A stretch of 64,000 nucleotides of DNA from Oikopleura dioica (taxonomy: Eukaryota > Animalia > Chordata). Shown piece after piece: positions 40,501-62,200 of this stretch (the stretch's first letter is position 1; every line of letters starts with the position of its first letter). Location of the stretch: contig OU015568.1 of the NCBI GenBank assembly GCA_907165135.1, positions 12,152,001 through 12,216,000 of the forward strand. Reading direction: 5' to 3'. Position numbers and translations under genes: made by a program. Below the pieces are notes generated by a model. That model made no database searches and was not told where the DNA came from. It saw only the letters and a program-made list of their open reading frames with translations.

Positions 40501-41519
40501 CTGTAATGAATTTCATCAACGGAAGAACTGTATTGTGAAAATAGCCTTCGAGATGCCTGAAAGCGACATTGACCAAGTGCATCGGAAATGTGAAACACAT
40601 CCTTGTGTCTGTTTGCTCGAAAGGCCAAACAGGAAATACTTCCGCCGCTCGCAACTTTGGTCGGACAATGTGACCGCCAGATTACGCCAATTGTACTTAT
40701 GCAAAGTCAAAAGTCAAATTCGCATATTTTTCAATTTCCCATCAATGCAACGAACTTATTTGTGTTTCATTTTGGCACTTTTACAACGTGTTCCTTTCCT
40801 GCCAAGATGTTGAAACTCGGTAGACTAGGGGAGCAGGGTTTTATGAAAAATCAAATAAGAAGGGTCTACCGTAGCGGCTGATAAGTACCACTGACCTTTT
40901 TCAATATCATCGGAACTGGTATTTTTTGAGATTTCCGAGAGCAGTAAAAGCTTATCGAAAATCAAGCCACCGAAAACATCAAAAAATCATCGAAAAAGAT
41001 AAGCACGTATTCATTCTCGTTCGAGTCAGCGTAGCGCGCGCACGAAAATAATATTTTTCGATTTTTCTTCGGAAATTTCGTTGCGCCCTTTCTTTCACTG
41101 CTTGAGCCGAGAACCTGTTCTTTTCTAGCGATCCTCGCTCCATTAGACAGGCAGTCTGGTTAACTTAACCCTAAACCTTTCTCTTTGTATTAAGGTAAGA
41201 GTCGCCTTAAAGACTCTGGCAGTTTCTCTTTGAATTACTCTAATCTTTCACGTCCACCACTGCTTGGTACAGTCGCCATAACGACTGATCTCTTCTTATT
41301 GATCTTCAGCAAGGAGGAGGAGGCTATTTCCTCCTCCTTCTTCTACTTGACGTTAAGGCTGCGGCCCCGCTACTCGCATTCGCGCCAAAAAGCGTTACTT
41401 TCTCACAAATACCCAACGGTCGCATTTGTTTCGCGCGTTCAGCTGCGCCGGACCCTGTCGCTCGGTCCTTGTTTCACTCTCTCAAAAGAGATTTTGAGAG
41501 ATTGAACTGCCCGCACTGA

Positions 41520-44500
41520 ATGAATTCCTTCTCTTTCGGCGATGGACCGCCATCACCCAGTCGACGAAACGATAAAAAGCGTAACCGAGAGGAGGATGGT
41601 ATGGCATCCTCCTCCAAAAACTCAAGAATCTCTCCAGGGCCTAGTGGAGACACTCCCCGGCCCCGTGGCACGTCGGACTTTAACCGTCGAAGATCCAACG
41701 GAAATGGTCGCTACTTCAACCCCCGCAACCGACAAAGTTTCGGTCAGCGAAAGCAAAACAAAGGTACTCCCTCCGAATAATACTGTAGTGACTTTATGCT
41801 CAGGGAATAACGGCGGAAACAACAGCGGCCCGTCGGGGCAAGCGAATAAACCGCCCAGAAAGCTATTCCAAGGGCTTAACGTCCTAACTACAGAAATTGG
41901 AGATACCCAACAAATGATTGACCATCGGTGCGACCTTGCGCGCCAGTCAGCTGTTCACCTTGCTGATCTGGATCTCAATGCTCATTCGGATATCGTTATG
42001 AACTACGACCTCTTCGACGAGAAACGTGGCTTTTTGAAAAAGGAGGATGGCTTCGACTATCTCCAATCAAGCGCATCGGAACTCACTGACTGCGGTTACA
42101 CGTCTAATAACCACGTTGTACACCGTAACGCCCCGTTCGTATCAGCAAACCACTACGAGGACATCCTCAGCACTGCCCTCCCTGTTTACAACAACCTTGT
42201 GCTCAGCTTCAGTTGGGTGCCAGAAGACTGGAAGGGTGACAAATATCAGTTTCACCTGTTCACTCGTGTCACTGTCCAAATCATGGAAGAAACACTCACA
42301 AAGTTGCACATCAGCTGGGATGAGATCCGATCCTTAATCGTCGTTAATAACAACGGTGAAATAATCCAGCCCACGTCCGATAATCTCACTCGCAATAACA
42401 GAGCCACAGTGAAAGGAATTCGCTTTCGTAGCCTTTTCCCAACGCTAAAGTTCATTATCCTAGCCAATGGGGCTCTCTCGCCGGTTGACCCATTTCATCA
42501 TGCCTATCAGATCCCACGCTGGGCAATGCTTTTCACCTTCACTGAACGCCTGAGCGGAGGAAGAGGCTTCACCGTCGTCCCAAACAACGGAGTCAAGATT
42601 CTGTCCGTACTTCGTGCAGTTCTTGAGAGATGGTTCCACTATGTGCTGAATTACCCGGGATCGTTTACCTTTCATCAAAAGTCAAACGTCCTTAACGTTC
42701 TCCCCATTGCAGCAATCTTCAACACTACCATCAGCAGTATGAATGTTGAGACCCTCTCTCCGAATGCGGCTGAATTTGACGAATGGATCTCCCGCCTAGA
42801 TCCGCTCATCTTCGACAAAAGATTTCACACGATGTCCAGGACCATCCCGCGATTTTATCATGACATCAGCAGAGCGATCATTGTGCTCCAAGAATATTTC
42901 AAAGCAGGTACTCGCTCCCACTGGTTCTCCATGACATCAGTAGAGCTCTTCATCTCAAAACTGGAACTACAGCGATCCTCCGCCAATCTAGCTGACACCA
43001 AGCTAACCGTCAAGATGCTTCAGGACCCAGATGTAATGACCTCCAAGGCCGAACTCGCTAAACGTACAAACCATCTGGCCAATGACCTCTCTAGGTCAAA
43101 GGATGATGGTCGAATTACATCCTCCGTGGACCACATTGTTAGAAATACTACCATGGGCAAGACAGTCGCGGAAGCCGAGTCCCAGCTCATCAAAGCTCAT
43201 GAAGAACGATGCCGTGCTGCCTCGGCCATTCAGAACGTTGCTCTTTATACACACTCAACCAACCGCATCCAGAACCACCAGATAATTGAGATCAGAAAAG
43301 AACTGGTTGCGTCTGCTACTACTCCTGAAGAAAGAGAAAGGAGGCAGCGTGCTCTCGACAAAGACCTGGCCTTTAATCTGCATCACGACAGGCACTTTAA
43401 TACTGACGGTACGCTTTTTGGCTCTCTCACCATCTTGAAGGACAAAAACTCGGCTCCTGCTGTGGTCAGCCTCAAAGACGATTCCAAAGTCTCTCTTACT
43501 GGCTACATGTCCGATACTCCAAATGATCAACTTGCTCGCCTGCACGAAGCGGCCTTCCACAAGAAGGAACTCTCCACCTCGCATTACTACTACAAAGCTG
43601 GCTTGCCTGAGGGTAGTCGTTCGTTGCAAGTAAACACTAATCCCTTCACCGCCGTCCAAAACGAGGTGCCGAGCGAGATATCCTTCCAAAACGCTTCTCC
43701 CTTGGACAACTCAATCACGGAAGCTGAAATGCCCTCAAATGAGAACATTCGTCAGGATGATGATCGTTCTTCAACTTACTCCTCCGATCTTCAAGCCGAG
43801 GAACTCACTCAGCGCCTCAATGAGTCCAAGGTAAAGACCACTAAACACTTTCTCTTCCAAAAGACGCTGTTGGATCACAACATTGCGATTGAACAGTTCA
43901 GCGATGATGAAAGAAGTGAGGTATCGGCCATTATTCAATCCGTCCAGCCTCCAGCTCCTGAAAATCAAGCTGAAATCTCTGCCCCGACAATTGTACAAGT
44001 GAAAACCATTGACCCCCAAAAGGGCCAAGTCGATCACGAGCTAACTGATCAATTTGCGACAGGGACAGATGCGAAATGGAACGCCATCAGCAAGATTGAG
44101 GAGCAAAACAGCTGGATTAACACTGTAGAAACATTTGACAACTCTGAGGATTTCATATTGAAGAAGAAGCCTGTTGTATTCTCCTCGGTGGAAATGTTCA
44201 ACAACGTCAAGGATAAGGCCAGTGTCCGAACCCTGAAGATCGAAAATGCAATCAGCAGATTCACTGGAATCAGCAACAAGAAAGAACTCGGAGTTCTTGT
44301 TAGAACATGGCACTCAAATATATATGAGCTCAGGGGCATCCTCGTTAACAACCTCCGTGATACAATCAACACGGACGATAAACGCAAAATTGAGAGTATG
44401 GAGCTTGATGATGCTGCATCTCTTGAAAATTGGAACAACTTTCTAGCGGGAGTCAGAGTATATCGCCTGGCTATGTATGACCCCGAATCCCTCATTTCGA

Positions 44501-44823
44501 TGCTCTTCTGCAATGCTGACACGCTCATGTCATATGTTCCAATTCCTCCGTCCAAAATAATCTACAATTGGGTCAAACTTATGATAATGGACAACAAAAA
44601 GGACAATGGTCCAAAGACGCCTCAAAACATCCTTCTTTCGCAACTGGTGGCGCTCGGCCTGCTCGTCACCAGCAGAAAATCGCACGTAGCGGTTTACAAG
44701 CGGGATGATCTACCTGGACAGCATCTCTTAACGAGCAAACCCATCTACGCCAGGATCCTAAAGGTCAGTCCTGCCCTGGTTTCAAGGCGCTTCAATATGG
44801 TAAAAACTTTATTAGAATCATAG
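41520..44823 (+). CDS. ORF1-like protein of the retroelement (short basic ORF 41520-41780 joined to the 1093-codon frame by a putative 40-nt intron)
   Basis: Long uninterrupted frame 41542-44823 upstream of pol. The overlapping RG/N-rich ORF 41520-41780 joins in frame if GT 41764-AG 41803 is spliced. No CCHC, RRM or PHD motif recognised. Confidence 0.7.
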
Positions 44824-47800
44824 CCATCAAAGAATATCAGCAAGAACTTAACTTCACTATTTTTGACTGTCCAAAGCTGGCTGAAGAAAAGCCAGGCTTC
44901 AAAGCTTTTCTTAACGAAGTTACTAGCAAATTGCTTGCTAATACTCTGCTTTGCGGCTTTCTCTGCTGGCTTCGGGACCGCAATTTCATCTCATCTTGTT
45001 CTTATAGGGGCCTTCTAACGCTTAATGACTCTGAAGATGACGATGATGACGACTCTTCCTCCGGCCTCCCACCCCTTTTACATCCTCCCCTTCTCCCAAA
45101 CTTCAAACAATATAAAAATCTTCTGGAAATCGAAACCACAACCCAACGAGAGAAGAAAGTTCTCCAATTCTTTGAATCAGGTACTGTTCCTAGAATGCCC
45201 TTCTCTCATAATATTCCGAGCCCTGAGGTCTTGGCTAAAGGTAAAGGCCTGGCTGGTATTTTGCCGCCGACCAGTGAGCTCCCAGCTCTGAAAAAATCCA
45301 TTCGATGCCCAGTTCCTACCTCAGGTGATCTCTCTGCGGCAGTTATCCAGCATAATGAGCAAATTATTAATGCCGCTGATAACATTGTGATCATCAGCGC
45401 GAACCTTGGTAACTGCAGATCCCTTGACAAAATTAAGCGACTAGTAAACCATCATCGCTCAGCCCATATTTTTTGTATTAGTGAATTGTTCATGGAAAAA
45501 GATGTGGCGCTGGATAAATCAAATTGGCCTAATGGATTCCATATTCATGTAGGCATGCCCTCTCGCGACGGCAAGAATCAGATCTTTACAATGATCATTC
45601 TACGCAATAATATTACTGTTAAGAGGATGATCCCCGATCTTCATCAAAACCTGGCGCTTCACATTGACGTCAATGGAACTCAACTTCTCGCCTGCTGTAT
45701 TTATAACTTCTGCGGCGGCCGTTATGATAACTACAAAACCAAGTACAACGTTGATGACTCGGCTTTTCTGCTGGACCTCGCCAAGGTTAGTCAAGAAAAG
45801 GGTGACTCTCCCTGCTTCATCACCGGGGACTTCAATCTCGAACTTGCAAAAAATAGCCCCAAATTTGCTCGAAAGTGTGACGCTGTAAAAAATGCCCTGT
45901 TAGATTTCAACCGTCTAACTAACTTCATTACATTCAGGCGTGAGCTTCGCAACGGCCATACCCTCGAGTCAGCAATTGATCATTTCTTCCTCTTCTCCGG
46001 CAAACTCGACCTCACCAAAGCTCTCTCCAAACCTGGTGATCACAGAACAAGTCTTCAATCTGACGGACACGTCGGCCTAGTTACCGTACTTCCCATCCGC
46101 CCCCCAAACGGTAAGATTTGGAAGTTATGGAGAGTACCCGAGGAAAAAGACCTTCATTTTTGTTACAAAACCGGCATGAAGCTAATCTACTCTAACCTAC
46201 ATAGGTTCAATGAGGAGGGAGGGATGGACACGGTTCAGGTCACACATGACCTGCTCGTGAAGTATGCTGAACTGACCCGCCCGCTAAAAGAAAAAATCAT
46301 CGTGCAAGATAATTATAAGGTCACGACTTCTGCTACCACTAGAAAGTGGCTGCGGACTGGCTTTTACCTTGAAAAGCTAATCCGGGACACTAAGAAGGAT
46401 GAAGTTCCTTCCTCCTGGTGGCGTAAGGTAGTTGACCTATGGGTTGACTGCAAGAAAGTAATTGAGAAACTCAAAACGGCTGATCGGCGGTACCACCTTG
46501 CGCGTAAAGCCGATCCGTACGAACTAAGTCTGACGGACAGCTGGGGTATTTTCAAAAACGACATTAAATTGACCAATAGCATGGAAGTGAATGACAGCCC
46601 CGATGACGTTGCAAATGAATTTTCTGAGTTGCAAAAGTCCACCAAGCCCAATTTAGAGAAATTGAAAGAAGCTGAGCCTCCCTCATCCCTTCACAAACTT
46701 CCAAAACTTGATTTTGAAACTGTTAAATATCACAAGTCATCTAACAGGCCTTCTATTCGGGAAATTTACTCCAAAAATAAAAAGAATACTTGTGATTTAT
46801 ATAATATAAATAAAAAATGTCTAGAGACCTTGCCGTGTGTCGCAACCAACTTCTTCATCCTGATGCCAATTCAGCTCTGCATTAGTGAAGGTAAGCTAAT
46901 CGATGCATGGAATATTAATAAAGTCGTCCCCATCCTAAAAAAGAATGGACGCAAAAGGCCTATCACGGTGGGAAGCTGTATTGGAGGTATTATTGAGAAA
47001 TTAGCAACCCGAACCCTTGCTGATTACCTCTTTCATTTTGGCTTAATCCCTCCCTCTCAACATGGCTTTAAGCCTTCCCACTCGTGTGGGTCGGCAATAT
47101 TTAATGTAACTAAAGTGCTTACCACTGCACTTGCGTCCCGAGTCGTGCCTAGCGGGATAATAGACCGTGCCGAACGCGCCAGCGGCGTTGTCATGATCGA
47201 CGCCGCCAACGCGTTCGGCACGGTCCCTCACGAGGTGCTCATCAGAATGATGCTCCCCTTCTGTAGCGTCAGATTTATTGAGTTCATCAGAATTTTTCTC
47301 GTGAGATTTTTCGTAGTTTCCATCAGGGGGTTTCTCAGCAGTGTATTTAAACTAGAGCCTTTCGGCTTGCCACAAGGCGCTGCGCCCTCCCCAATTCTCT
47401 TTTCCTTCTTCAGCACCAGTATCCTGCTAAACGCTCTAATTGATCCTATTCTAGTGCCTGAGCGCCCGCTTGAGCTCACCCTGTCATCCTCGTCTCTGCT
47501 GTGCAATGAGACGAACTGCCGCTGCGACCACGGAGCTCCACGTGAGTCCTGTATCACCGAAGGTATTAGTTTGGGACAGAGGATGAAGTGCGGTAATCAT
47601 CCTCGTTTAGCAGGAGCGTTTACCTTGTATGCGGACGATGTGGCAGCCGCGGTGTTTGGAGCCGACATCAACGATGTCAACGCTGGCATTGCGAGTACTG
47701 CTGAGGGCGCCGCTGATCGAATCGAGAGCCTGGGGCTTAGAGTTGCTGATCAGAAGACTGAAGTACTCTTAATAAGTAAGTCCGACCATCTCCCCAACAT

Positions 47801-48743
47801 TAACATCAGAGGCCAAGCCATCCCTGTTTCCAACTCCCTTAAATACCTCGGCGTAACCCTTGCATCCGTAAATGGCAAGTTGTCCCTTAACAATCATGAC
47901 AAGATTATCACGTGCAGGTTGCGGAGCAATCATCACAAGCTAGCCACTCTAAGAGGCGTCGTCAGTCCAAAAGCAAATGCCCAAATGGCCCGAGGCCTAA
48001 ACTACGGAATCATAAATCACACTGCAGACTATAGGCCTATCCCGCCGCAATCCACAGTGAACACATGGCAGCGTATTCACTGTAACTCGCTGTTGGGTCG
48101 TACACCTCGGCCTTGGTACATCATTGAGATGCAACGTAAAATGGAAGAGGAACAGCTCTCTTCCTCGTCCGCATCACAAAAGCCTACCCTTAATCTCCCC
48201 ATTGACTTCATCAGGCTCGAGTACGGCAAGCCTGTAGCTGATGATGACCTCATTGTCCTGGACAGATACGGTCAACCCACTGTTCTCGACAATATGGTCA
48301 CAATGGGGGTTAATAATATGCATAAAGTCTGGAAACTGCATCTCCCGGTCTGTGCATGGGAATCGCTTAAGCTCTCCTTGATCCTAGTTGACCGCAAGGG
48401 AAACAGGGTCGGTGTGCTTCCGGACTTCGGTGAGTATTCCAGGAGAAAGACATTCTTCATTAACGAGTCCAGGTTCCATCATGACAGAACATTTGGCATT
48501 CTCACCGCCAAAGAGCATGCTGAACTAGCCTCCCTGTTAGTTGAAAGGGAAAGGTTGCGCTCGCTACTATCTGCGGGACATCTCACTATTAGAATGACCC
48601 ACCCTAGGCGTGAGTTACTTAAGCAGAAAATTGATAAGAATACCTGGCCTTTTCACCTCATCAGCTTTTTAACGACCTACCAACGAGCATTCGGAACAGC
48701 TTTGTATCTGATGACTTTCCAACTATTCTTAAACTATTTATGA
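44709..48743 (+). CDS. ORF2: apurinic-like endonuclease plus reverse transcriptase
   Basis: APE motifs SANLGN, CISEL, CIYN, TGDFNL, IDHFF, SDGH; RT motifs QHGFK, IDAANAFGTVPH, GLPQGAAPSPILF, YADD, KYLGV. The frame is open from 44709 and the first ATG lies about 65 codons before the APE. Confidence 0.95.
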   Translation, partial: STWTASLNEQTHLRQDPKGQSCPGFKALQYGKNFIRIIAIKEYQQELNFTIFDCPKLAEEKPGFKAFLNEVTSKLLANTLLCGFLCWLRDRNFISSCSYRGLLTLNDSEDDDDDDSSSGLPPLLHPPLLPNFKQYKNLLEIETTTQREKKVLQFFESGTVPRMPFSHNIPSPEVLAKGKGLAGILPPTSELPALKKSIRCPVPTSGDLSAAVIQHNEQIINAADNIVIISANLGNCRSLDKIKRLVNHHRSAHIFCISELFMEKDVALDKSNWPNGFHIHVGMPSRDGKNQIFTMIILRNNITVKRMIPDLHQNLALHIDVNGTQLLACCIYNFCGGRYDNYKTKYNVDDSAFLLDLAKVSQEKGDSPCFITGDFNLELAKNSPKFARKCDAVKNALLDFNRLTNFITFRRELRNGHTLESAIDHFFLFSGKLDLTKALSKPGDHRTSLQSDGHVGLVTVLPIRPPNGKIWKLWRVPEEKDLHFCYKTGMKLIYSNLHRFNEEGGMDTVQVTHDLLVKYAELTRPLKEKIIVQDNYKVTTSATTRKWLRTGFYLEKLIRDTKKDEVPSSWWRKVVDLWVDCKKVIEKLKTADRRYHLARKADPYELSLTDSWGIFKNDIKLTNSMEVNDSPDDVANEFSELQKSTKPNLEKLKEAEPPSSLHKLPKLDFETVKYHKSSNRPSIREIYSKNKKNTCDLYNINKKCLETLPCVATNFFILMPIQLCISEGKLIDAWNINKVVPILKKNGRKRPITVGSCIGGIIEKLATRTLADYLFHFGLIPPSQHGFKPSHSCGSAIFNVTKVLTTALASRVVPSGIIDRAERASGVVMIDAANAFGTVPHEVLIRMMLPFCSVRFIEFIRIFLVRFFVVSIRGFLSSVFKLEPFGLPQGAAPSPILFSFFSTSILLNALIDPILVPERPLELTLSSSSLLCNETNCRCDHGAPRESCITEGISLGQRMKCGNHPRLAGAFTLYADDVAAAVFGADINDVNAGIASTAEGAADRIESLGLRVADQKTEVLLISKSDHLPNINIRGQAIPVSNSLKYLGVTLASVNGKLSLNNHDKIITCRLRSNHHKLATLRGVVSPKANAQMARGLNYGIINHTADYRPIPPQSTVNTWQRIHCNSLLGRTPRPWYIIEMQRKMEEEQLSSSSASQKPTLNLPIDFIRLEYGKPVADDDLIVLDRYGQPTVLDNMVTMGVNNMHKVWKLHLPVCAWESLKLSLILVDRKGNRVGVLPDFGEYSRRKTFFINESRFHHDRTFGILTAKEHAELASLLVERERLRSLLSAGHLTIRMTHPRRELLKQKIDKNTWPFHLISFLTTYQRAFGTALYLMTFQLFLNYL

Positions 48744-49171
48744 AAAGCAAGCACAAGCACCACAAAAGGGCAATCTGGTGCGACACATGCAGGCCAGGCG
48801 CACCCTTTTACAAGTTCGACCTCCATCCCTCTTTGCCACCTACCTCAAAACCATCTACTCCTCGCGTTATTCGTTCCAATTGTACTCCATCTGATCTCCG
48901 GATGGACGAATATCTGAACAATCTTGAGGAAAGTATTGAATTTACCAAGAAAGAACATGCACGGGTGTTGCTTCTTGCAGACTGGTGGTTTCCCTTTAAT
49001 AAGAAAAGAAAAATTTATGAGTCTTTTGAGTCATTTTGTAGTCTTGTGAAGTTTCTAACAGGAATATCAGGAAAGGAAAATCTTATGGCTAAGCAACTCT
49101 TGTTCGATAAGACCACAAAGCTTGCTCTTGAAAGAGCAGCCATCAAAATCACCTTGAATAAGATGAAGTAA
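48740..49171 (+). CDS. ORF3, CxxC-containing; probably the spliced C-terminus of ORF2
   Basis: Overlaps the ORF2 stop as ATGA and contains WCDTC. A GT 48704-AG 48747 intron (44 nt, AT-rich) would fuse it to ORF2 in frame. Confidence 0.6.
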   Translation: MKSKHKHHKRAIWCDTCRPGAPFYKFDLHPSLPPTSKPSTPRVIRSNCTPSDLRMDEYLNNLEESIEFTKKEHARVLLLADWWFPFNKKRKIYESFESFCSLVKFLTGISGKENLMAKQLLFDKTTKLALERAAIKITLNKMK

Positions 49172-49244
49172 CCCCCTCCTACTCTCATATGCATCAGTCA
49201 TATAATTTCTTTTAGAAGTCAACTTCCTCGGCCAACGACTTCAA

Positions 49245-51459
49245 ATGGTGATGGATGATGTTGATCCCGGCTACGCAGTCGAGTATGTGCTGTACGATAT
49301 AAAAACTGGCTCATACAAGGCTATTACTCATATCGAGATTCAGTCACCATCCTTCATCGCTGGCCGAAATGTCCATGTACTTCCATCCTTTCATGGCGAA
49401 GACATTACACGCAACTTGAATGTTACTAAAGGATATAAGTTACCCTCCCATATCCTTCGATTGGCAGATGGCTATTACAACAGCTATAGCAAACACTTCG
49501 GCTATGATAAGAACAACTTTCTCGTATGGCTTGGCGTCAAACAGCAGCTACCAAGCCCTGCCACTCGGGCGAAAATTCGTTCTGCTCGACAGGCATGGGA
49601 AAACATCGCGACTGCTCGGAATTCAGCCTGGAAGTTGGATGTTCGCTGCTCACTCTCCATCGCTGAGATCAATGAGGCCAATCCTTCTTCCTTCCCGAGC
49701 GACATGCTATTCGAATCGTCAGAGCCACATCTGGACGCTCGAATTAAAAGCTGCCAGCATCGCCCTCTACGGTGACTTCTTCATTCTCCCAACCGCAGGA
49801 GCTGCAGTTATTCTCAAGGACAAGAAGGGAACTGCGGGCGCCTGGATCAACATCAGGACGGTTGAGCTGCTCCAGAGATCAAATGATGCCATGAATGCTC
49901 TCCCATCAGTTCTCATGAAGCTATCCCACTACTACACGGTTCTTCGAGCTTTTCGTCAAACTGGGCTCTTCAGCAATCTCGACTCAAACGAGCAAATCGC
50001 CTCCATCGCAGTAAATCTCTGCTCTCAGCCCTGCAAGAGTGAGATTGCTGTCCTCAAGACTGATATCGTCTCCTTGATTCACAAGTTCGGCTGTGGGGAT
50101 GAACACACCGACATCTTTGATTATGCCCACGGAAAATCACTACCACACTCTGCGTTCTTAGGGATCAATAAGGGCATACTCGAGCAAGACCTTATCGAAA
50201 TTACTCAATTTGAGTGGAATATGATGGAGGAGGTTGCATCATCATCCTTCGGTCACTCGTTGTCCACGCTCCTGAACAAAATGGCCGCGCACGTCTCATC
50301 CTCCATGTGCAACTTCTGCTCCACGCTTAAGGACGTCGTGGATTCCCGGGACGCTGGTGCCTCCAATGCTGATCTGGAAAACCGTGCCGCTAATGCTCAG
50401 AAGATCTTAATTGCCTTCATAAACAAGCTCAAAGCCATCAGCACAAACCGTAAGTCTGGTGAATCTAGGCGGATGACCGAAAGCCTCTACTCCTTCATCC
50501 CCGCCGGTGAGGAATCTAGGATGATCCGCCACCTTCTTGAGCACCATGCTTGTCTAATTCAAGCCACTGGCTTTCTAAAAACGCGTCCCACTCGTCCAGC
50601 GCTTCATGTGCTTTGGAGATCAAGAGCTCTCACGATCCTCGTCGTCAACGATTGCTGTAAGCTTCTCAAACTACTTGTAGCTGAGATGGCTCGCATCACG
50701 GGTCCGGGAAACCCCTCCGTCGTTGATCCCGAGCTGAAGGATCACTGCACTCTCGCAATGACTCTTCTGAGCATCGTAGCGAAAACAAAATCCAAATTGG
50801 AGACCAATGGTGGCAATGCGTTTTCGAAAGCCCTGGCAAAAGTGGAGCTGGCCATTAACACCACTTTATTGAAAGCCTCTCCCTCTTTCACCATTTCGCG
50901 AGAAAAAGCCCGTGCGATCACACGTCCGGCCAAGAATCTCTGTCCAGTTCAGAGCATTGAAAAAGCGGATCAAGCTGAGCTTGACCGCTTCCCATCACTC
51001 ATTGACCCAGAACTTTCCATCATAAAAGCTATGGCTGAAGCGCAGCTTCAACTCCTAACTAATATCTTCCAAGGATCTATCACCACCTCCGGTAGCGATG
51101 TCATCGACCGAGGCTGCCCGCTTCTTTCCATGACTACTCTAAACGACTCCTCATCTCTTCCCTCGGGTGAAGAAGCCAACCTTGCGCTTGTGGAGTCAAT
51201 CCACTCGCTTCGTCTTCGCGCCCTGGTTGATTCTCGCAAGAGGCGAGGTGATTTTCTCGGCCGGCCTACTCGTTATGGACTATCCGACCGAATAATGGCA
51301 TCAACTCCAGCTGGTGCGGTCGGTGAGGAGATCTTGCATCCCAATCACACTTACGAGACCGTGTACGCAGCGACTGCTGTTGTAGAGCCTGCAATCATCC
51401 GACTGGATGATGATGAAGAGCCATCCTCCTCTGGCATGAAGCTTCGCTCAGCAAAATAA
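49245..51459 (+). CDS. ORF4 (49245-49775) and ORF5 (frame open 49420-51459): extra downstream ORF(s) of unknown function
   Basis: Two long overlapping frames, 176 and 679 codons, downstream of pol. They are preceded by an AT/pyrimidine-rich spacer ending TTTTAG (49215) and followed by a CT-rich UTR with AATAAA at 52021. Confidence 0.75.
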
Positions 51460-52392
51460 CTCTCAGTAATCATCTTTCAGTAAGTCGCTGATTATAAGTC
51501 GCACCATTCTTATTAAAAACTTCAGTCATCCGGGTACCTGCAAGTTCAGACTGGCTTATCAACCCCCGTCAACTACAAAAGCGCCAGCACTTTGTGAAGA
51601 TTCCTCTACGTAGTTTATTTACTTAATAACTCTCACTGTTTGACCCACCATCCCGCTCTTTTTCTCTACCAAAGTCCTCATCGTCATCTTTAGCTGTCTT
51701 TTAAATTCAATCCCTCTCGGATATTACTTCTCTCTCTCAAAATTCTCTCAAAACGTTTCATGACTTCTGTAATGTATACCAATCAACTCCTGCTTAGCTT
51801 ACATCTCTTGTCAATATTCCATACTTTTAAAACATCACCCTCGCCTTCCTCTTATCCTGCAAATTACTGCACATTTGTTATTTCATCACATATTGCAATA
51901 GGCTATAACCATGCTTTCATGCCACAGTCTCAGCATCTGTAAGTTTCCCCATCTCCATTCTCTTATCTCCATAATATTCTCTCCACAATTGTCAATATTT
52001 CGAACATCCTCTTACCACACAATAAATACATCTTGACAAGAAACTCTCAAAGGATTCGATACAGATTATGAGGCTGTATCTCCTCTTGATTCAGTCTTTT
52101 GAACTATTTTATTGCATGAAACACAGCAGGGCCTATGACTAAACTATATCAGTATGTCTTTACAATCTATGCGCTAATCTTAAATCCTGAAAATTATAAT
52201 TCGGAAACTGAGACTTTAACCCTATAACAATCTCCTATAAACTGAAACATTTGGTAAGTTAAAACAGTAAAACAGTCGGGTGGAACAGTAGATGTCTTCC
52301 TCAGGGTAAGCGTGGTACTTGTTGTAATATGATCTGAAGTCTGCAGTTTACACCACTAATAGGTAACAATAAACCCCCCAACCTGTGCGTGG

Positions 52393-55300
52393 CTAATTCT
52401 TTGGAAAGCAAGCGCGACCAAGGTACGATTCGGACAATGTTGTTGGCAGATGATGTCTCAGAGACAGTAGTCGCTTTCGTTCCAAATCGTAGAAACAGAG
52501 TGGTACCTGGCACTCTGGATATGTCGTAACGGATCGTCGCTTCCCGCCGCTGTTCTGGTAAATACTGTAAACTCGTCGACAGTAGAGTGTACAGAGTGCG
52601 ACCACGTCCGTCAATTGCCACTCACGTGAGAGGAGATGCTCCATAAGTGGTGGAGCACTATTTCCCTCATAGCGGCCAGTACCGAACGGAACGGAGTTTA
52701 CAACCTCTGAAATTGATCGTCAATAATTATCACATTAGATTTAAAACTATCAGAAGGATGAAGCTACGACATCCTCCTCCAGACAGACTAATGCCTCAAG
52801 CTTACCTTCGGTTAATCGATCAAAATAATCTCGAGGGAAGAACCGCTGTTGCCGTGAGGGGCGCGCGTCGGAGTAACATAAGGGCTTAAGATCGGCAGGC
52901 TCGCGCTCCCTCTCCACAAAGCTGTCGATGTCCTTAACAAGCTGCGCCCATCCCTCTCGATTCTGCGGGCAGTCGACGTCGCTACAAGTTGGCACCTCAC
53001 ACCGGTTTTGAGGAGTCGGCAGCATCTCAGCCGGGAACAATCGTGTTATCACCCGTCGTCGCCGTCGAGCCTCCAGTCCGTGCAAATGGGTGTTCAAGCG
53101 TGAAACCCGGTCTTGTACCTCGGTGGAGGACAAGCCGAACTCGAAAGGATTTTTCGTGCCAGCCAACTCCTCTCTAAAAGTTTAAAATGACTTTACATTC
53201 TCATCCTTCAGTAGTGCATGCAAATTTCTCCTGTCTACTCTTACCGGCATTGCAAGGCCAAGAGTTGCTTTCGCGATTCAGAGTCGTAATCAGCTACTAC
53301 TGGACTGTCCCTCACGCGGCGTCGGAACTGTTGGTAAATAGCGTCGGCATCCCTAGAATATGCTCACTAGTAATAAGATTGAATTGTAGACGCTCCAATG
53401 AGCGAATTAACTATGGAGGATGATGGTCTCACCTCCTCCTAATTGAACTAGGCCAAGAAATTAGCGCCTACTCTTTCTGGAAGCGTGAAGGTACTTACGA
53501 AGCCAGATAGTCTGGTGAGCCGGCAAATTCTGGTCTATCGGCGGGGCACAGCTCCTCTGGAAACGGCTGTCCTGGGAACGTATCAGGCTTGTGAGCGGCC
53601 CCATATCCAGCGGCTTGGTGCTCTGGCTCAGCCAGCAACAGATAATGTAGCCAAGTTGAAAATAGATCGGCCTGTGTCGCCGTGATGTTCGCGAAGTCGA
53701 CTATGACGTTCCCAGTGGGCATCGACAATCGTGCGGGGACGCCAAAAAGCTGGAGAATATCGCAAAGTATCCCTATCTCGCGACAGTAACGTGGATATTC
53801 CTAGTGGTTCTTGGTTAACATCTCACTTATTCTCTACTTATTATACCTTGTGAACATCTCTTTTGACCTCGTCACTGAAGACGAGATGATAGTAAGTTCC
53901 TGGGCCGGAAAAGAAGGGGTCCATCATCACTCGTTGCTGGCTTGCGACATTCTGATCGATCGCGGCCTTTCCAACAGGGTAGATGACAGCGTTGAGGTCT
54001 GTTGGTGACAAGCCAACCGATGCCTGACGATGATGTCGCATCTTCATCTCCTCGTCTTTTGATTTGAAGTCCAACACCGGGCGTACTTGTCCCTCTCTTG
54101 AAACTCTGCGCATCAACTCGGCCAAGTGCGCAAAAGTCATATACCTGATTAATTACATTTATCTTCTGCTAATTATTCTGAGGAACAGATTTTGGGACTT
54201 ACATTGTTGACACGCCAGCCAGATAACTCGCGCCTGCCCGCAAGCATGGACCATCTGTAGTGCAAGTAGGCGACAAGCACATTAGGTTGAGCGGCCCCGA
54301 ACGATGGTCGTGAGCGCTTGATTGGCAAAACACGCGTGGCAGATTCCGGGCGAGAAGGCACTGTAAGACTTCGCCGCTAAACTGAGTGGACGGGTCGTGA
54401 TAATACGCAAAGCACAGTTTCTAAATGGGTTGTATCAATACTTGCACTAAGGAGGCTGTATCTACATCCTCCTGGTCATCTCTTGTGTCTGAAAATCCTT
54501 TCGTTTCTTAACTACTCACACTTTGCAGAATTCTCTTCGACTGGGTGAAGCCGCGACCCTGCTCCTTTGCTAACGTGAACTCAGCAGCAGCGTCCACTGT
54601 TGTGGAATAATCAGCGGCACAATTTCGTCGGTAAGGGCGGTTGAACAAAGTGGCGGCGTGCATCAAAGATTGTAACTCATCCTTGGGCACCTCTCGCAGT
54701 CGCTTATCGAAAAACTCGACAACATCGTTTACTAAAAGAAGATTCGGTTATGCCCTCATCTGTAGCTAATCCTCACCAGATGTCAAGGACTTGTATATTT
54801 GAGTTGCAATGTGCATTGCTTCGCTCTCCTTAGGCAAATTCTTCTCAATGGTATCGTTCAGAATTTGTCCACATTCGCTATCTGTTAAGCCTCCGTCTCT
54901 CTTCTCACGGGCGGCTTCCCCCAACGTCGTCGTCAAATCCGTCGAGTATGGTGAAATGGTTGCTCCACCGCGGTCTGACAACTTGGGAGGACGTACACCC
55001 TTTGCTCGAAACCGGCGTAATCGCATGCTGCGTGGCTCCTGCTTGCGCTGCGCCCGTTTTATGCCCCGCCGCACGTTTCCGGTTCGAGTAGCTGGTCGCG
55101 ACGGCCGCGGCCGAGGTGGCTCTGGTGTGTCGTGGTCAGTAGATGAGGATGATCCTTCCTCATGCTTAACATTCACTGCAGGAGCCGGCGCTGGATTGAT
55201 ATTCTGTTCGTCATCGTCGCTTTCGATGACGATAATGGTGGCCTCGCTACTCGGCTGAACCATCTCTGGACCTTCGTTGGTGTCCATCTGCTCCTCAGCT

Positions 55301-57781
55301 TCAAGGACCTGCTCTTCGTTGTGAGCCATCTCTTCGACCTCGATTTCCTCCTGGCCATTCGTTGGCGTAGCTACTGGGCTAGGTCGAGGCATTCCACTTG
55401 TGGCCTGACGCTCTGCTTGAACCGATGCTGGACTTGTCGAGCCCTCTGGAACCCCTCCTGAAGCAGCTGCTTCATCCTTTTGAACAGGACTTGTCCGTCC
55501 ATGTGATGCACTTTTGGGCGATGTCTCTTCTTCCATTGGAACAGGTGCAGGGCGTGGATCGTCCAGCAGAGTATCGTAATTCGGATCAATAGTATTTTCA
55601 TTGTGATAGACAGTTTGATTCGCTATTGTCTCCAACGAAGGAATCTCTGTCTCGGTCTCCTGTACAGTCTCATCTGGTGGCGACGAGGGAGCCACTGAAG
55701 CCCCCTTTTCTGCATCTTCTGACGTATCTTTATTTCCAGCTGGAAGTTCCGTGGAAGACACGCACTCTCCGGTTTTCTCCTGGGCAGCAGCATCCAGCGG
55801 ATCGGTCACGATGATCACTTCCTCTTCTGAGTTCTGGGCCCCAGTCGATCCATCTATTTCGGGGGCCTGAGATTCGGTCTGATCTGTTTCCATAGATGCC
55901 GTCGTTGTCTCTACAGGCGCGGCGTTGGGCGAACTGGATGATACACCTTCCTCGTCCTCGGGCGTTGGCGCTGACAACGATGAAGCTTGTGCTGGCTGCT
56001 CACCTGTCGGCAGTTGTCGATTTTGCTGTGTTGTTCTTACGCTTCGTTTCACTCGCTCGGCCTCTTTTCCAACTAAAGGTTGTAATTATTATCAAAGCAT
56101 TAAAATCCTAAATTCTTGTATCACGAAAACTGTGACTTACCGATATACTCCATTCGTGAAACCTTCAAGTCTCCATCGTCGGTCTCTTCAACCATGTAAC
56201 GCGCTCTCACTCGCGAAGGTCTTGAGGATGCTTCTGCCTCCTCCTCGTCAGAAACAGGCGGGCTGCGTTGGCTCGCAGGTATAGCGCATGCTTGGCGGAA
56301 ATTGTTGTAAGTGGGCGGAGCCATGAAATGATGCAGCTCTACGCCATCATAATCGTTGAGTGGTGGAGCTTTAAGATATATGTTAAATCACGTTTGTTTT
56401 AGTATATGCTCCGTGAAGCACAACTTACCATAATCCTCTGGTGACAATGCATGCAAACACTGTCGCACACGGTGCTCCCCTACAACGGCAATATGATCCG
56501 CTGGCATGAGAGTCGCCACCAATTGTTTTGACGTGTCCAAAATTCTACATCTCATTAAGAGATAGACAGGGTCCATTGGAAGTGTAGCCATGTGTGACGC
56601 ATAATCACGGTTGTACTTCGAGTTGAACCCAACCTAAATGGAGGTTATGCCGGTCTTTAAAAGCAATCCCACAGCGCGGAAGTGCGCTACCCACCTTCAG
56701 GACATGCCCCAATAGCTTTGCTCCGATCTTCGTGGGACGGATACTCCTCACGTATGAAAATGTCTGTCGCATTATCTCGGCAATAACGGTTGGTCCCTGT
56801 CGTGAATTCTTGTCCAGCATCTCGAATAATCTAGAGTAGACAGATATTTAATCAGGATGATGTATTCTCTTCCTCCTACCTCGACTGAAACTCCTGATAT
56901 TCCGGCATCTGCGGCAGCAAATAATACTGGTCAGGTCGAAAAGCGGATTGATGACGAGCCATTTCTATCAGAGCTCCAGTTAGCCTTACCATCTTTTCAA
57001 CTCTTGGTTGAAGTTTGCTCATCTTCATCTTTGAGTTGCTTGCCTGATGCAAGAACGGTCGAATCATCTTCTGCATAAGTACACACTGCATGGTTGGGTA
57101 TTTGAGCATGCTCAAGTATGAAAGTTGCTCCGCCGAATGATAGAGCAAATCTAGCAGCTGAGAGCGTGACATTGCTCTGGAGTAAGCATCCAGCAGTGCC
57201 TCGTGCACCAACTAAAATATATTTGCATAATTTCTTGCACTCGAATGGGCTAACAATAAAATGGTTACACTCAAAATCTGTTCAAATTCTGTTCTTAAAG
57301 TCGATCTGCTCATTTTCTACAAGATACCTATTCATGACAAATCTCTTACCTCGCTCAAGAGTTCACACTCCACTCGGGAGTAATGTGAGGACGGCTCGCT
57401 GAAAACGTTGTTTCCGGGAAGGATTGTTGAGCCCTGATTCAGCTTCGTTCCTCCCAGAACTCCATTTGGTGATATCTCAACCCAGGCGGAAGTTGGTGGT
57501 ACGTAGGTAGAAGTGGAGGGGCCCTCCTCCATTAGCGATACCTCGGCTTCGTCAGAGGAGCCGCTGGTCATGCTAGACTTCTTCCCCTTCGTTTTTGCCT
57601 TGTTGAAAAACGTGCCCAATAGGGTTCGTTTGCGATCTGGCTCCTTGGTCGGGCTTCCCTCGGCATCAGCACTTGGCTTGGCGCGTTTCTTGCCCTTATC
57701 GGTGCTGTTTGCGCCGCGTGACGCCTCTACAGCAGGTTCGTGAATCTGGCCTTCTTCGCCCATCGCGGAGGAGGATGGCAT
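52393..57781 (-). CDS. Intron-rich antisense gene inside the retroelement, roughly 1,500 aa, unknown function
   Basis: Track ORFs 57332-57781, 56876-57211, 56605-56820, 56388-56591, 56121-56324, 54766-56052, 54508-54690, 53841-54140, 53495-53728, 52750-53166 and 52393-52644 mostly end or begin at GT-AG sites that join in frame (e.g. introns 56831-56879, 54732-54776). Minus-strand AATAAA at 52108-52113. Confidence 0.75.
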
Positions 57782-59197
57782 GTCTTCCTCCTTTTCCTAT
57801 TGTATAAAAGTTAATGCTAGCGTTTAGGTTAGCGATTTTCACAGGTCTTACCAAATTAGTCTCTGGGATTTTATCTTTTATCTCCCTTATCTAGTCTGTG
57901 GAGTATCCAAGATATAATAGCCGCACGGTTTATGAAAAATCTTGTGTGAAGCGACCTAATATAAGGGAAACGCAAGATTTAAACTAACTGCGATTAATTT
58001 CGAAGTTTCTCTCAACCTCACCCTTACGGTCGCAGCTGAATATTCCCGATCATTTCACATCTCCTCCCGCTATATTCCCTCTAGATAGATGTTTACCTGT
58101 GTTGGCGGAAAATAAGCGTCGACCGGTCGCACTATCTGGACTTCAGCCATCTGCAAATCTCCAAAAGGAGGAGGAGGTCGGGACATCCTCGGTCTTGCTC
58201 GTTTCGATACTCCATCTTTCAGCTGTTGTAGTAGTCACGATAAGTAGGCAACTGACCACCTCGGGCTTCCGAGCCCTCATATCAACAACAATTCTAGAGA
58301 AAATAGCATTTTTCCAGGAAATCCTCAAAAACACTCAATATGCGTCTAGAAATCATTATGTAAGTAGGATTTAACAGAATTAGTGAATAAAATTGTCAGC
58401 ATTGAACTATGCAGTAGGATTATCCAACACTGCGCGTCATCTGCGTCGTCTTCCTTATCTTCAATCAAAACAACACTTCTCTCGCGCTCCAGATCTTATC
58501 GGTCAAGTAGCGTGTGAGGCTTCGTGACGTCGCTGCCGCAGCCCAAAATTACGTAATCGCGTGGGTGGGAAGCGTGTACCCTCGGCTCACGTAGTAAGAT
58601 GCGCGAAATCGATGTGAGCCATTCTGTATGACGTCCCTGAGGTGTGTTTGCGCTTATTTCTATCTCCTCCTTTTACTAACACCTCCTTGCTTATGCTCCA
58701 ACTTTTTGTAAACGTTTTGTTATCTTGACGACGATGAGGATAGATCCTCCTCCTCCTGACGACCCGCACAAACTGCAACAAGAGAAAAGACGACAACCCA
58801 GAAGACCCGCTGCAACCTTGACGATGACGATGAGGTCCCAGGAATCCTCCACCGCTAAAGCCCTGTTTACCGCACCGAGAAGACCCAGAGAAGCCAATAA
58901 AATCCATAAAGATTTATTCATCATTCCCAATTTTTCCCCATTATATTACCTCCTCCCTTACCCTACTGTTAGTCTCTCTTTCTTTCATTCTTTCTTTCAT
59001 TCTATTTTCGTATTCTGTAACCACCACATCAGTGTTAAGCTTTGATTACGTCTCAATCAAAGTCCTCTTTCACTGTGCTATATACACTCCCATCATGCAG
59101 CCACTGTTCAGCTGCCCTATGCTCATTATATATACTGTTTCCGGAAATTGCTCCTGCTTGCGGGTTCAATTTGCCAACCACTTTCATAACTGCATCC

Positions 59198-59223
59198 AAT
59201 AAAATACCAAAAAAAAAAAAAAA
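59198..59223 (+). terminator. Polyadenylation signal and genomic poly(A) tail of the retroelement
   Basis: AATAAA, 5 nt, then A15, then the TSD copy. Confidence 0.8.
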
Positions 59224-62200
59224 CGCCCTTGGAGCACGACAAGATTTGATTTGAAATTGGTTATTTTAATTTCTTTGGTAAAAATAATTAAAGGGCACTT
59301 GAAGTGGCGGAATGAGCGGGGACCAGTTCCGGTCGGAAATTGCGCTGAAACGCGTTCTCGAATGGGTGAAAGAGGGATCCGCCGGAACCTCGGCGAATAT
59401 TCGGAGGATGTTTTCGGGACTCGATAACTAACGACTTTTTATGAAATAAATTATCATAAAACACCCTTTTTCGCATCAAATAGCAATATGTACATTTAAC
59501 CGCGAGAGCAGCGTTTCCCACCGAGCGGTAAAGAATCTGAGAATTCCTCGTCGACCACGAAACAAAATCGACTTTCAAGAGTTTCCAAGCCAAAACTACA
59601 CATTCTCGACGCTCACCACAAATACACAAAAAATGTAATCTCGTGTGAGAAAAATGCGGATCATTCGAAAGTCAAGTGGCGCCCTTCAAACTATACATAA
59701 CCTTATTTGAAAAAAGGGAAGATTATTTATCTTTCTCTCGAGGGTTGAAGCTAATTGTTATCTAAAGAGGGGTGGAGGAAGCTTGCATAGAGAAACTCTG
59801 TCGATAATAATCTGTAAATTTATTGAAGTCGAAAGTCTTCTCCTTCCTTTGGAACAACTAGAATTCAAGCCAGGATTTCGATATTTCTATACGATTAGCT
59901 TCTACATCCAATTTAGAAGCATTTCGGATATTTTGGGGGAATTCTTCACACCAAAATAAAACAGGTCGCTTTCGCCGTCACGGGAATCTGAGGAAACATA
60001 CCCTCGTACATAAACATTTTGGTCAAAGTCTTCGTCCTGTTCCTAAATATTCACGGCCAGGGCGCGTGAAATTCCGGAACATCGTCAAGGCATTTTTGAG
60101 CATCGTTGAGAAGATTTTTTAAAGCTACAGGAGAATTTTGATTTGATAGTGGATAAAAACGATTTTCTAACCAGTTAAACCTCTGCTATCTTAGGTAAAC
60201 TTATGTGTAAATTAAAATATGTTTGTTCAAGGAAAAAGAAAGGCAGCTAAAATTGAACGTGAGAAAAGAAGCACCGACGAAATGCAAATTTCCGCAATGG
60301 CCAGCCTCGGTACTGGTATCTAATTAACCTGATAAGTGCGCTGACCCTGTGCCAAGGGTCAACTTTCCAATATCCGCGTTTCCAACACGCTCCAAATACA
60401 CAAATCGCAAGCGCAAAATTATGCTTATTCAAAGCTGATAAACCACTCTAGACCGTGATGCAATAAGTACTTTAATTCCAGAGCGTTGGACATTCCAACT
60501 AAAATCAAATTTGAATCGAAAAAACTTAAATCTCTGCTATCTCGGTTTCTATCCACTGAAATCAACAACGAAAAAGAACATCAATAAGGAAAAGCCCTTA
60601 GCTTCGGTACAATCCTTTGTTTATTTTCTGTCACGTGTTTCTTGCAGTGTTCAAAACACAATTTCCAACAATTATCGACAACTGCAAAACTCTTAATCCC
60701 TCAGAAGCGCCGCCAATAATTATTTTCAAAACTCGGTCTGTCCAAACTTTCAACTTGGAAATTCGAAATCAGCGTCTGCCCTTTTCGTTTTTGTTTGGCT
60801 TGATCAGCTGATGGAGGTTTTGAATTTCTAAATTTTAGAACTTTTCGGCGCAGGTGCGGCAAATATTCGCTCGAAATAAGGACGATTGCTTGTTGACTAA
60901 ATTTGGGAGAAATTAGCAAAGCCACTGCTGCAAAAATACGTATAAACCTAGAAATCAGAGAAATTCGCATGTTTAGGTAACAGCTGAAAGGAGCGCTTTT
61001 CTAAGGTTTAATCCTATTTACACCAGCTCCATGCTCATTATTAGAGGGATAATATATTTGGACGCCGAATGCGAATCTAAAGGGATTAAAATTGTAGAAG
61101 ATAAATTCCAGCGAGTGAAAACATCGCGAAAATTTACACAATTTTTGTGAATAAAATTTGAAGCTCTTTAGTTTCTTTGAAAACGAGAAGTTAATTTTGA
61201 CAGTTTTACTTTTTCGAGCAGAAATTACTGTGTCAACAGTTGCTAATTTGAATATTCAAATTTCCGATGGCTTCTCAGCCGGATGTGCTTTAATTAGGCT
61301 GGAAATGTCACGTGGACCAGATAGCGAATTTTGGAGAAAAATGATGATGAAAATGGCTTCCTCGGCGACCTTTATCGCACCAACGAAATTCTCGGCCTCT
61401 GCCAAATTTACACCTAAATTAGCCGCTAAACTCCACCTGAAAACGATAATTTAGGAAGTCGAAGCTTTGAAGACTTTTTTTCATTCTTACTCTGCGCGAT
61501 TTTACAGTAAAGCGCACCTGCAACAGCTTACCTTCCCCAATTAGGCCAAGTTGATCCTACAAGCTCCCCATAAAATCCTAAACTCACTAAAATTCACACT
61601 CCAAATTCATTCATTACAGAAAGAAAAAGAAACGTTTCCATCTGGCTGACCCACATGGACGCATTTAATGATTCCCATGCTCCAAAAACAAGCATCAAGC
61701 AATAAATCGAGCTTTATGGGGACACTTTCGCGTGCGTCTGGTAATTTTCTTGACAGTTTATCATATTTGACACTCTTATGGTTGGCAAAATGATGTTTGG
61801 GAGAAAGTTTTCGCTGCGAACTTTATTGGTTAATTATGCCAAAAGTGTGTATCATGAAAAATAAAGTGTTTTATGCTCTAAACTTTTGGGTCTTTGAAGT
61901 TTTATCAATGCGGAATGGGCTGACCTTGAATCGGAGTCGTGTTTTGCAGGGGATGCTTATCGCAGCTTGATGGGTGTTGTTACAGACTTTTTATTTTGTT
62001 TGGCTAGTGCGGTACACATACTTTAGGAGATGTCTGAGAAGGCGGCTGCCAACTTTGATTTTTGTTGTCTGGGCCTACTCTAATGGTGCCCGCTCCAAAA
62101 TGGCAAAAATGATAATCAGGCACACACTCAGCCACCACCGATGAAAGGTTGTTTATATAGAAGAATGTACCGAAGAATATTTTCTGCAAATTATTTCCAA

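Follow-up and report, generated by a model that had tools for sequence, protein, structure and literature searches.

A predicted 13-exon antisense gene shared by giant LINE retrotransposons of Oikopleura dioica

Long interspersed nuclear elements (LINEs) are, to our knowledge, regarded as minimal elements that carry one or two open reading frames (ORFs) on the sense strand and no introns, since they are copied through processed RNA. A stretch of 64,000 nt of the Oikopleura dioica genome (contig OU015568.1, positions 12,152,001 to 12,216,000, referred to as the window) contains a LINE that appears to depart from this design, and raises the question of how a gene split by a dozen introns comes to lie within such an element, on the opposite strand. 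An earlier note, made from the letters alone, had proposed either a stable passenger or a captured host gene. The comparisons described below make it quite probable that a clade of giant (~18 kb) LINEs of O. dioica, in which an apurinic/apyrimidinic endonuclease (APE) is joined to the reverse transcriptase (RT), carries the gene as an integral accessory component passed on by vertical descent. The structural and evolutionary statement on an antisense gene in this clade is made with good confidence, and any specific activity of the protein with much less.

The genome searched was the O. dioica OKI2018_I69 assembly (64.28 Mb, 19 contigs), described in PMC8008620. Loci are given by its contigs, C1 to C5, and the window itself is on C1. 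The gene model was derived from reading frames and splice signals and is a prediction from sequence, and conservation of the window gene was assessed exon by exon or through the database proteins of its paralogues.

Structure of the antisense gene

The gene is on the minus strand, with a start ATG at 57781-57779 and a TAG stop at 52395-52393. The coding sequence of 4,449 nt (1,482 codons and the stop) is a single open frame throughout. About a dozen exons had been proposed, and 13 were found in one frame. All 12 junctions are GT..AG and every intron contains in-frame stops. The introns at 56831-56879 (49 nt) and 54732-54776 (45 nt) are correct as first placed. However, the range of 33-60 nt given for intron length was too narrow, as the introns measure, in order, 138, 49, 61, 60, 68, 45, 99, 58, 46, 146, 71 and 99 nt (45-146 nt). 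The components of the gene are as follows.

52393-57781, minus strand: antisense gene; 13 exons, 12 GT..AG introns, 1,482 codons, exon-wise conservation
57781-57350, 57211-56880, 56830-56695, 56633-56429, 56368-56141, 56072-54777, 54731-54520, minus strand: exons 1-7
54420-54203, 54144-53847, 53800-53499, 53352-53245, 53173-52806, 52706-52393, minus strand: exons 8-13
56141-57781, minus strand: exons 1-5; N-terminal part, mainly helical, ~440 amino acids (aa)
54777-56072, minus strand: exon 6; acidic S/T/P-rich middle of 431 aa, probably disordered
54203-54420, minus strand: exon 8; best-conserved module, with invariant C-x16-18-C-x4-C-x5-C and invariant R and G
53499-54144, minus strand: exons 9-10; alpha/beta region, conserved, and modelled best in the AlphaFold prediction for a paralogue
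52806-53173, minus strand: exon 12; invariant NP, H and C-x4-C-x3-4-C-x2-N
52393-52706, minus strand: exon 13; conserved C-terminus, TAG stop at 52393-52395
52108-52113, minus strand: AATAAA of the antisense gene, ~280 nt past the stop codon, read directly
57797-57851, minus strand: candidate intron of the 5′ untranslated region (5′UTR), or just a (trans-)splice acceptor; GT 57851-57850, AG 57798-57797, 15 nt before the ATG
57767-57791, unstranded: GGAGGAGGATGG / CTTCCTCC hairpin with the ATG of the antisense gene in its loop; fold z -1.7

The outline of the protein drawn in the earlier note agrees well with this model. The helical N-terminal part corresponds to exons 1-5, of which exons 2, 4 and 5 show 31-35% identity, to the contig-2 copy only (see below). 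The acidic and disordered middle of ~430 aa is exon 6, which has 79 D/E versus 41 K/R and 129 S/T/P residues and is closed by a basic patch (54991-55170, net +12 in 60 aa) that is NLS-like, suggesting nuclear localisation. Exon 6 has no detectable similarity between paralogues, yet their NCBI gene models have the same architecture. Exons 7-13 form a cysteine-containing C-terminal half of ~530 aa. The Cys/His clusters noted there are real and fall in exons 8 and 12, and their cysteines, 7 in all, are invariant across the homologues. Profiles of exon 8 built with one group left out scored 40-75 bits.

The polyadenylation signal assigned to the gene is present, whereas the proposed 5′UTR intron stands in part. 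Its GT and AG are where they had been placed, but it is a candidate only, and the acceptor could equally be a spliced-leader trans-splice site. Two additions offered by a length-maximising exon search, a mini-exon of 48 nt (57316-57269) and an extra intron (52565-52605), were dropped, as the paralogue backs the simpler model.

The carrier LINE

The element that contains the gene occupies 18.1 kb of the window, and its features are as follows.

41091-59223, plus strand: non-LTR (lacking long terminal repeats) retrotransposon (LINE), 18.1 kb, containing the antisense gene; APE and RT Pfam domains, poly(A), flanking repeat
41084-41090, unstranded: left copy of a putative target-site duplication, CGCCCTT; identical to the 7-mer after the poly(A)
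59224-59230, unstranded: second, right-hand CGCCCTT of the putative duplication; immediately follows the poly(A)
41542-44823, plus strand: ORF1-like ORF, 1,093 aa; without a Pfam domain, shares 34% identity with the contig-2 element
44931-48743, plus strand: APE-RT ORF, 1,270 aa; endonuclease upstream of RT in one ORF
48740-51459, plus strand: further sense ORFs behind the RT, 143, 176 and 679 aa; no Pfam domain, 29-35% versus the contig-2 element
57852-59096, minus strand: 3′ region of the LINE, which would hold the promoter of the antisense gene
59097-59223, plus strand: 3′ tail of the LINE; ~100 nt, AATAAA 59198-59203, ATACC, 15-nt poly(A) 59209-59223

The ORF at 44931-48743 matches Pfam Exo_endo_phos (residues 158-354, E 2.3e-7) and RVT_1 (residues 668-832, E 3.3e-13). 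As in an APE-type LINE, the endonuclease is upstream of the RT, the 3′ end has a poly(A) signal without LTRs, and 5′-truncated copies exist. An Rfam scan of 41000-59300 gave no match, nor did a word search of a protein database with the RT ORF.

The placement of the gene inside the retrotransposon, as first claimed, is borne out by the boundaries of the element. The gene lies between the APE-RT ORF and the LINE AATAAA and poly(A), and the poly(A) end is ~1.4 kb beyond the antisense start codon. The terminal ~125 nt of the element (59097-59221) recur alone with their own poly(A) at two loci, C4:10466524-647 and C1:15620741-866, with 82% identity to the window. These copies have unrelated flanks and each ends in poly(A), the classic appearance of 5′-truncated LINE copies. 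The match runs precisely up to the poly(A), which fixes the terminus of the transposed RNA at a point beyond the antisense gene. The contig-2 element has a homologous tail at its own 3′ end, and both have an AATAAA and an A-run. The CGCCCTT flanks agree with these limits, though a 7-bp repeat has a chance expectation of ~0.12 in a 2-kb search space and is weak alone; no target-site duplication was found for the contig-2 element. The antisense promoter would lie within the LINE 3′ region, because the 5′ end of the gene is 1.4 kb inside the LINE 3′ end.

Odin, an Oikopleura-specific clade, is the sole non-LTR family reported for this host (PMC4122922, PMC8008620). The window element probably belongs to it, a label that rests on the shared host and on Odin being the only family reported. 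No description of the structure of Odin, or of an antisense gene in it, was found in a search that did not reach the primary accounts (Volff et al. 2004, Denoeud et al. 2010, Naville et al. 2019).

Recurrence in other elements and co-divergence with the RT

The gene and the RT are single-copy in the genome at the DNA level, and their relatives are seen at the protein level. A second element, C2:2412791-2430669, is colinear with that of the window from ORF1 to the 3′ tail and shares 29-48% aa identity with it, but almost no DNA similarity. Of the 13 antisense exons, nine match its paralogue (31-48% aa identity); the introns do not. Profiles of exons 8 and 10 detected a homologue behind the RT at C4:14.13 Mb, C5:3.72 Mb and C5:4.31 Mb too. 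The homologue is on the opposite strand, 4-5 kb downstream of the RT, in all five elements (C1 window, C2:2.42 Mb, C4:14.13 Mb, C5:3.72 Mb and C5:4.31 Mb), though the RTs of these elements are only 28-58% identical. Pairwise identities of the antisense gene and the RT are as follows.

Window and C2: antisense gene 37%, RT 44%
C5:3.72 and C5:4.31: antisense gene 42%, RT 58%
All other pairs of the five elements: antisense gene 22-28%, RT 28-35%

Among the trees made from single exons, those of exons 8, 9 and 13 (three of five) reproduce the RT topology exactly, and each of the two cherries appears in four of five. The introns between exons 8 and 9 (phase 2) and between exons 9 and 10 (phase 0) occupy the same positions in all five copies, differing in length (42-116 nt) and sequence, and every exon is open in all five. 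The shared introns and the agreement of the trees indicate that the gene and its introns are older than the split of the element lineages and were carried with the RT. For the window and contig-2 genes pN, the proportion of nonsynonymous differences, is 0.48 versus a pS (synonymous) of 0.78; as pS is saturated, dN/dS is not estimable for this pair.

A LINE is copied from its sense RNA, where antisense introns read CT..AC and are therefore not spliced. Each new full-length copy would thus inherit the intron-containing gene, and the conserved intron positions fit inheritance through sense RNA. Taken together, the same position and orientation in five diverged elements, the shared intron positions and phases and the matching trees support the stable passenger of the earlier note, and the gene appears to be a long-kept component of the LINE clade and not a one-off transduction. 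A single host orthologue, which would have implied the latter, is not what was found.

Two simpler explanations fare poorly against the same evidence. The gene could be outside the transposed unit, either as one of several host genes that happen to be beside LINE insertions or because such LINEs prefer to insert upstream of such genes. The single-copy state of both element and gene in DNA, and the shortness of the target-site duplication, would suit this. However, the LINE poly(A) signal, the poly(A) and the conserved 3′ tail are all beyond the gene, order, spacing and orientation are equal in five elements, and the trees are congruent, which leaves a coincidental neighbourhood very improbable. 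The gene might instead be a neutral or decaying passenger, or an artefact of prediction from chance open frames, and the lack of domain hits and the low-complexity middle third are what such a sequence would give. Against this, 1,482 codons are open over 13 exons with canonical junctions, and conservation is limited to the exons, runs at 22-48% over the five elements and extends to proteins of the Bergen lineage. With the seven invariant cysteines and the conserved intron phases, these features reduce the chance of this second alternative to almost nothing.

Several further features of the colinear elements were observed. The ORF1-like and APE-RT frames, which are separate in the window (44823/44931), form one open frame of 2,624 aa in the contig-2 element (C2:2415743). 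The contig-2 element has an extra minus-strand coding piece, C2:2423615-2423809, just 3′ of the antisense gene; the window element has no equivalent. The NCBI model CAG5094861.1, which represents the antisense gene on contig 2, probably arose by fusion during annotation, as its first 157 aa map outside the element (C2:2431182-2431810) and a 2.4-kb intron spans the 3′ end of the LINE. Antisense exon 12 has a weak similarity (30% identity over 90 aa, E 0.001), probably due to chance, to a contig-2 ORF located after the RT, read on its reverse strand (C2:2421516-2421782, minus). A small sense ORF at 58725-59045 (plus strand), within the last 500 nt of the window LINE, may represent a short terminal gene or act in cis, and its start region (58824-58858) is the sole stretch of clear DNA identity to the contig-2 element (35 nt, 91%).

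Short, stable hairpins of the pattern GGAGGA(GG)ATG..CATCC(TCC)TCC are found inside the element only, with 6 pattern matches versus 0.08 expected (41313-41337, 41591-41615, 53415-53439 and 57767-57791, and imperfect at 52752-52778 and 47578-47605). An ATG is in the loop of two, one in ORF1 and one at the start of the antisense gene, and others are in antisense introns. The pattern in the window element is GGAGGATG..CATCCTCC and the contig-2 element has its own version, AGGATGATG..CATCATCCT. The hairpins may be cis signals that co-evolve with each element.

The protein family

An exon-8 profile made from seven genomic copies was scored against 1.84 billion representative proteins. It gave 7 hits, all from O. 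dioica or unnamed fragments. Four of the 7 are OKI2018_I69 gene models, P0002 (1,508 aa, the C4 copy), P0003 (1,422 aa, the C2 copy), P0004 (1,408 aa, the C5:4.31 copy) and P0001 (858 aa, a copy at C1:16.98 Mb that has no RT). The others are CBY34785.1 from the Bergen lineage, the Logan hit P0006, with a cluster that includes CBY10610.1, and a JGI fragment, P0007. Between the Bergen proteins and the nearest Okinawa copy of each, identity is no more than 31-36%. In the NCBI models of three paralogues (1,408-1,508 aa), exon 8 is at the residue position expected from the window model.

No family had been recognised from the sequence, and the searches lead to the same result. Neither the window exons nor six full-length homologues match Pfam-A at the gathering score. 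Exons 8, 9, 12 and 13 gave nothing below E 0.1 against PDB sequence profiles, the ESM Atlas gave no match, and Foldseek found none in PDB and BFVD. A word-based protein search with residues 900-1508 of P0002 returned only the query itself. By these comparisons the antisense protein forms an orphan family.

The AlphaFold model of P0006, an 805-aa fragment that covers the conserved half, has a mean pLDDT (per-residue model confidence) of 49.7, with a core of pLDDT 75-90 that corresponds to exons 9-10. The best VIA-align match to this model is the Smr domain 2vkc (Z 7.2, root-mean-square deviation 3.5 Å, 102/105 residues), followed by Alba-like Pop6/7 (Z 6.3) and other Smr entries (Z 5.7, 5.3 and 4.7); a Z under 8 is typical background by the tool's own statement. 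Smr PF01713 gave no hit in the six full-length homologues at E up to 10, and a PF01713 scan of the whole genome found two unrelated loci only. A Smr-like fold, suggested by the modelled structure, is therefore a lead only.

Homologues without an RT and the origin of the gene

A number of observations weigh against the reading of the gene as an integral part of these LINEs. With the gene and element single-copy in DNA, there is no recent full-length sister copy to show that the gene transposed, and the 7-bp repeat does little to replace one. A more distant LINE lies at C2:4.59 Mb; its RT is ~28% identical, and the 10 kb behind this RT hold no homologue. The promoter, the splicing and the 5′UTR intron are predictions, and no domain, solved structure or confident fold match points to a specific function. 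Finally, three homologues, at C1:16.98 Mb, C5:3.58 Mb and C3:2.47 Mb, have no RT nearby. The earlier note asked whether homologues always adjoin an APE-RT ORF; those of the five elements do and those of these three loci do not, and it follows from the latter that the gene can persist outside a LINE.

The copies at C1:16.98 Mb and C5:3.58 Mb are intact and share 80% aa identity, with pN 0.15 versus pS 0.73, which argues that they are genes under strong purifying selection. They are part of a colinear multi-gene block of at least 16 kb (C1:16978621-16994924 and C5:3572999-3589608) that shares ~68% DNA identity, with synonymous sites saturated. The duplicated block comprises the RT-less paralogue, a RecQ-like helicase gene (DEAD and RecQ_Zn_bind), a multi-exon gene and a short gene on the opposite strand, and may be either a host cluster or a mobile unit of another kind. 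The sequence compared at each locus, ~10 kb on the side corresponding to the RT and 5-9 kb past the 5′ end of the gene, showed no similarity to APE, RT or ORF1. Farther out at C1:16.98 Mb, ORFs of at least 150 aa have no RT or integrase domain. The copy at C3:2.47 Mb, which is very diverged, has no RT within 10 kb. The small coding piece of the contig-2 LINE described above has homologues close to two of the RT-less copies (at C5:3572138-398 and C3:2483115-234).

In the exon-8 tree, which is unrooted and made from 70-100 residues, the RT-less pair attaches to the central branch, a position consistent both with one ancient capture of a host gene and with departure from a basal element. Under the first of these, the gene would derive from a family of host genes whose present-day members are the RT-less paralogues beside the RecQ-like helicase. 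One ancestral LINE would have acquired a copy complete with promoter and introns, for instance through transcription that ran on into adjacent DNA in antisense orientation, and all five elements would descend from it. The selection on the RT-less pair, its location in a block without APE or RT, its attachment where an outgroup would join and the lack of the gene in the distant LINE group all speak for this. However, the family was not found outside O. dioica among the 1.84 billion proteins, hence there is no independent host orthologue. The RT-less block occurs twice and has the second small coding piece in common with the contig-2 LINE, and may itself be element-derived, and the tree is short and without a root. 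Capture is nevertheless a substantial possibility, held tentatively, and as it concerns origin it is compatible with an accessory role at present.

Under the second, the gene would have arisen in the element or been resident there for long, and the RT-less copies would be element-derived genes kept by the host or by another mobile unit. These copies are 26-30% identical to the window and contig-2 group, at least as close as the LINE groups are to one another (22-28%), although these identities come from only ~153 aligned residues. A gene near the 3′ end is also what 5′-truncated LINE copies would retain, and the coding piece common to the RT-less loci and the contig-2 element points the same way. 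Against it, no poly(A) or LINE tail was found beyond the RT-less copies, and the homology runs on into the RecQ-like gene. Domestication is thus possible but the less likely of the two origins.

Discussion

Whatever its origin, the gene is best interpreted as an integral accessory gene of the LINE clade, and a mode of action can be proposed. It would be transcribed from a promoter in the last 1.4 kb of the LINE and end at its own AATAAA, so that antisense expression would be separate from translation of the sense RNA. The product, with its helical N-terminus, long acidic disordered middle, basic NLS-like patch and cysteine-rich C-terminal half, would be nuclear and would work in trans on behalf of the element, perhaps by aiding the ribonucleoprotein of the element or its integration, or by modulating sense-strand expression or silencing, as does HBZ from the 3′ end of human T-cell leukaemia virus type 1 (HTLV-1). 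Retention across such divergence suggests that element lineages that lose the gene do not persist. The product is probably an element-serving accessory or regulatory protein, nuclear and trans-acting, expressed from the 3′ end of the LINE.

No description of a spliced antisense gene kept in LINEs was found in the literature searched. One likeness is to HBZ (and to ASP of human immunodeficiency virus type 1), where a protein gene is opposite the replicative genes, near the 3′ end, and transcribed from there. The HBZ mRNA undergoes splicing, its intron stays in the genome since replication copies the sense RNA, and the nuclear product modulates expression of its own element. However, HTLV-1 is an LTR retrovirus, and HBZ is a small basic leucine zipper protein with one intron, whereas the gene described here is in a poly(A) LINE and has 12 introns and a 1,482-aa orphan product known from sequence. 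ORF0 of primate L1 is likewise an antisense-encoded protein of a LINE, but it is ~70 aa, located in the 5′UTR, without internal introns and primate-specific. The O. dioica gene spans 5.4 kb and multiple exons, lies at the 3′ end and is conserved between lineages whose RTs share only ~30% identity. In Drosophila TART, a non-LTR element, antisense transcripts are abundant and carry introns that are spliced. We know of no conserved long antisense protein for TART, whereas coding capacity is the conserved feature here.

Bdelloid rotifer retroelements (LTR elements with ORF3, and Athena/Terminons) are also enlarged by accessory ORFs, some of them common to unrelated element types and to cellular genes, and the ORF3s have recognisable enzymatic or env-like (envelope) domains (PMC5408684). 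A term search of that account returned no intron and no antisense-coded ORF; the gene in O. dioica, in contrast, is antisense and intron-rich and has no recognisable domain. Homing-endonuclease genes placed antisense inside nuclear group I introns are likewise protein genes of a mobile element split by spliceosomal introns, but they belong to another kind of mobile element and to a known enzyme family (PMC9548176).

A bolder reading is that the giant-LINE clade is a complex retroelement with genes on both strands. Besides ORF1, APE-RT and the extra sense ORFs, it would depend on a spliced antisense nuclear protein, made from a promoter at its own 3′ end, that controls its expression or shields it from silencing, HBZ-like but independently evolved. 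The gene would also have moved between element and host, where the selected paralogues adjoin a RecQ-like helicase, and antisense placement would be a general route for intron-containing genes. This combination is speculative and, as a whole, unlikely.

The finding bears on annotation as well as on the biology of LINEs. The OKI2018_I69 assembly has been described as almost free of LINE/Odin (PMC8008620), yet the antisense genes of these elements are annotated in it as ordinary host genes. By antisense placement, a LINE lineage appears to have kept a 13-exon gene over a long evolutionary time. If the element needs the protein, or is regulated by it, the coding repertoire recognised for non-LTR elements would grow, the antisense genes of retroviruses would have a natural counterpart, and there would be one way for intron-containing genes to travel and duplicate by retrotransposition.

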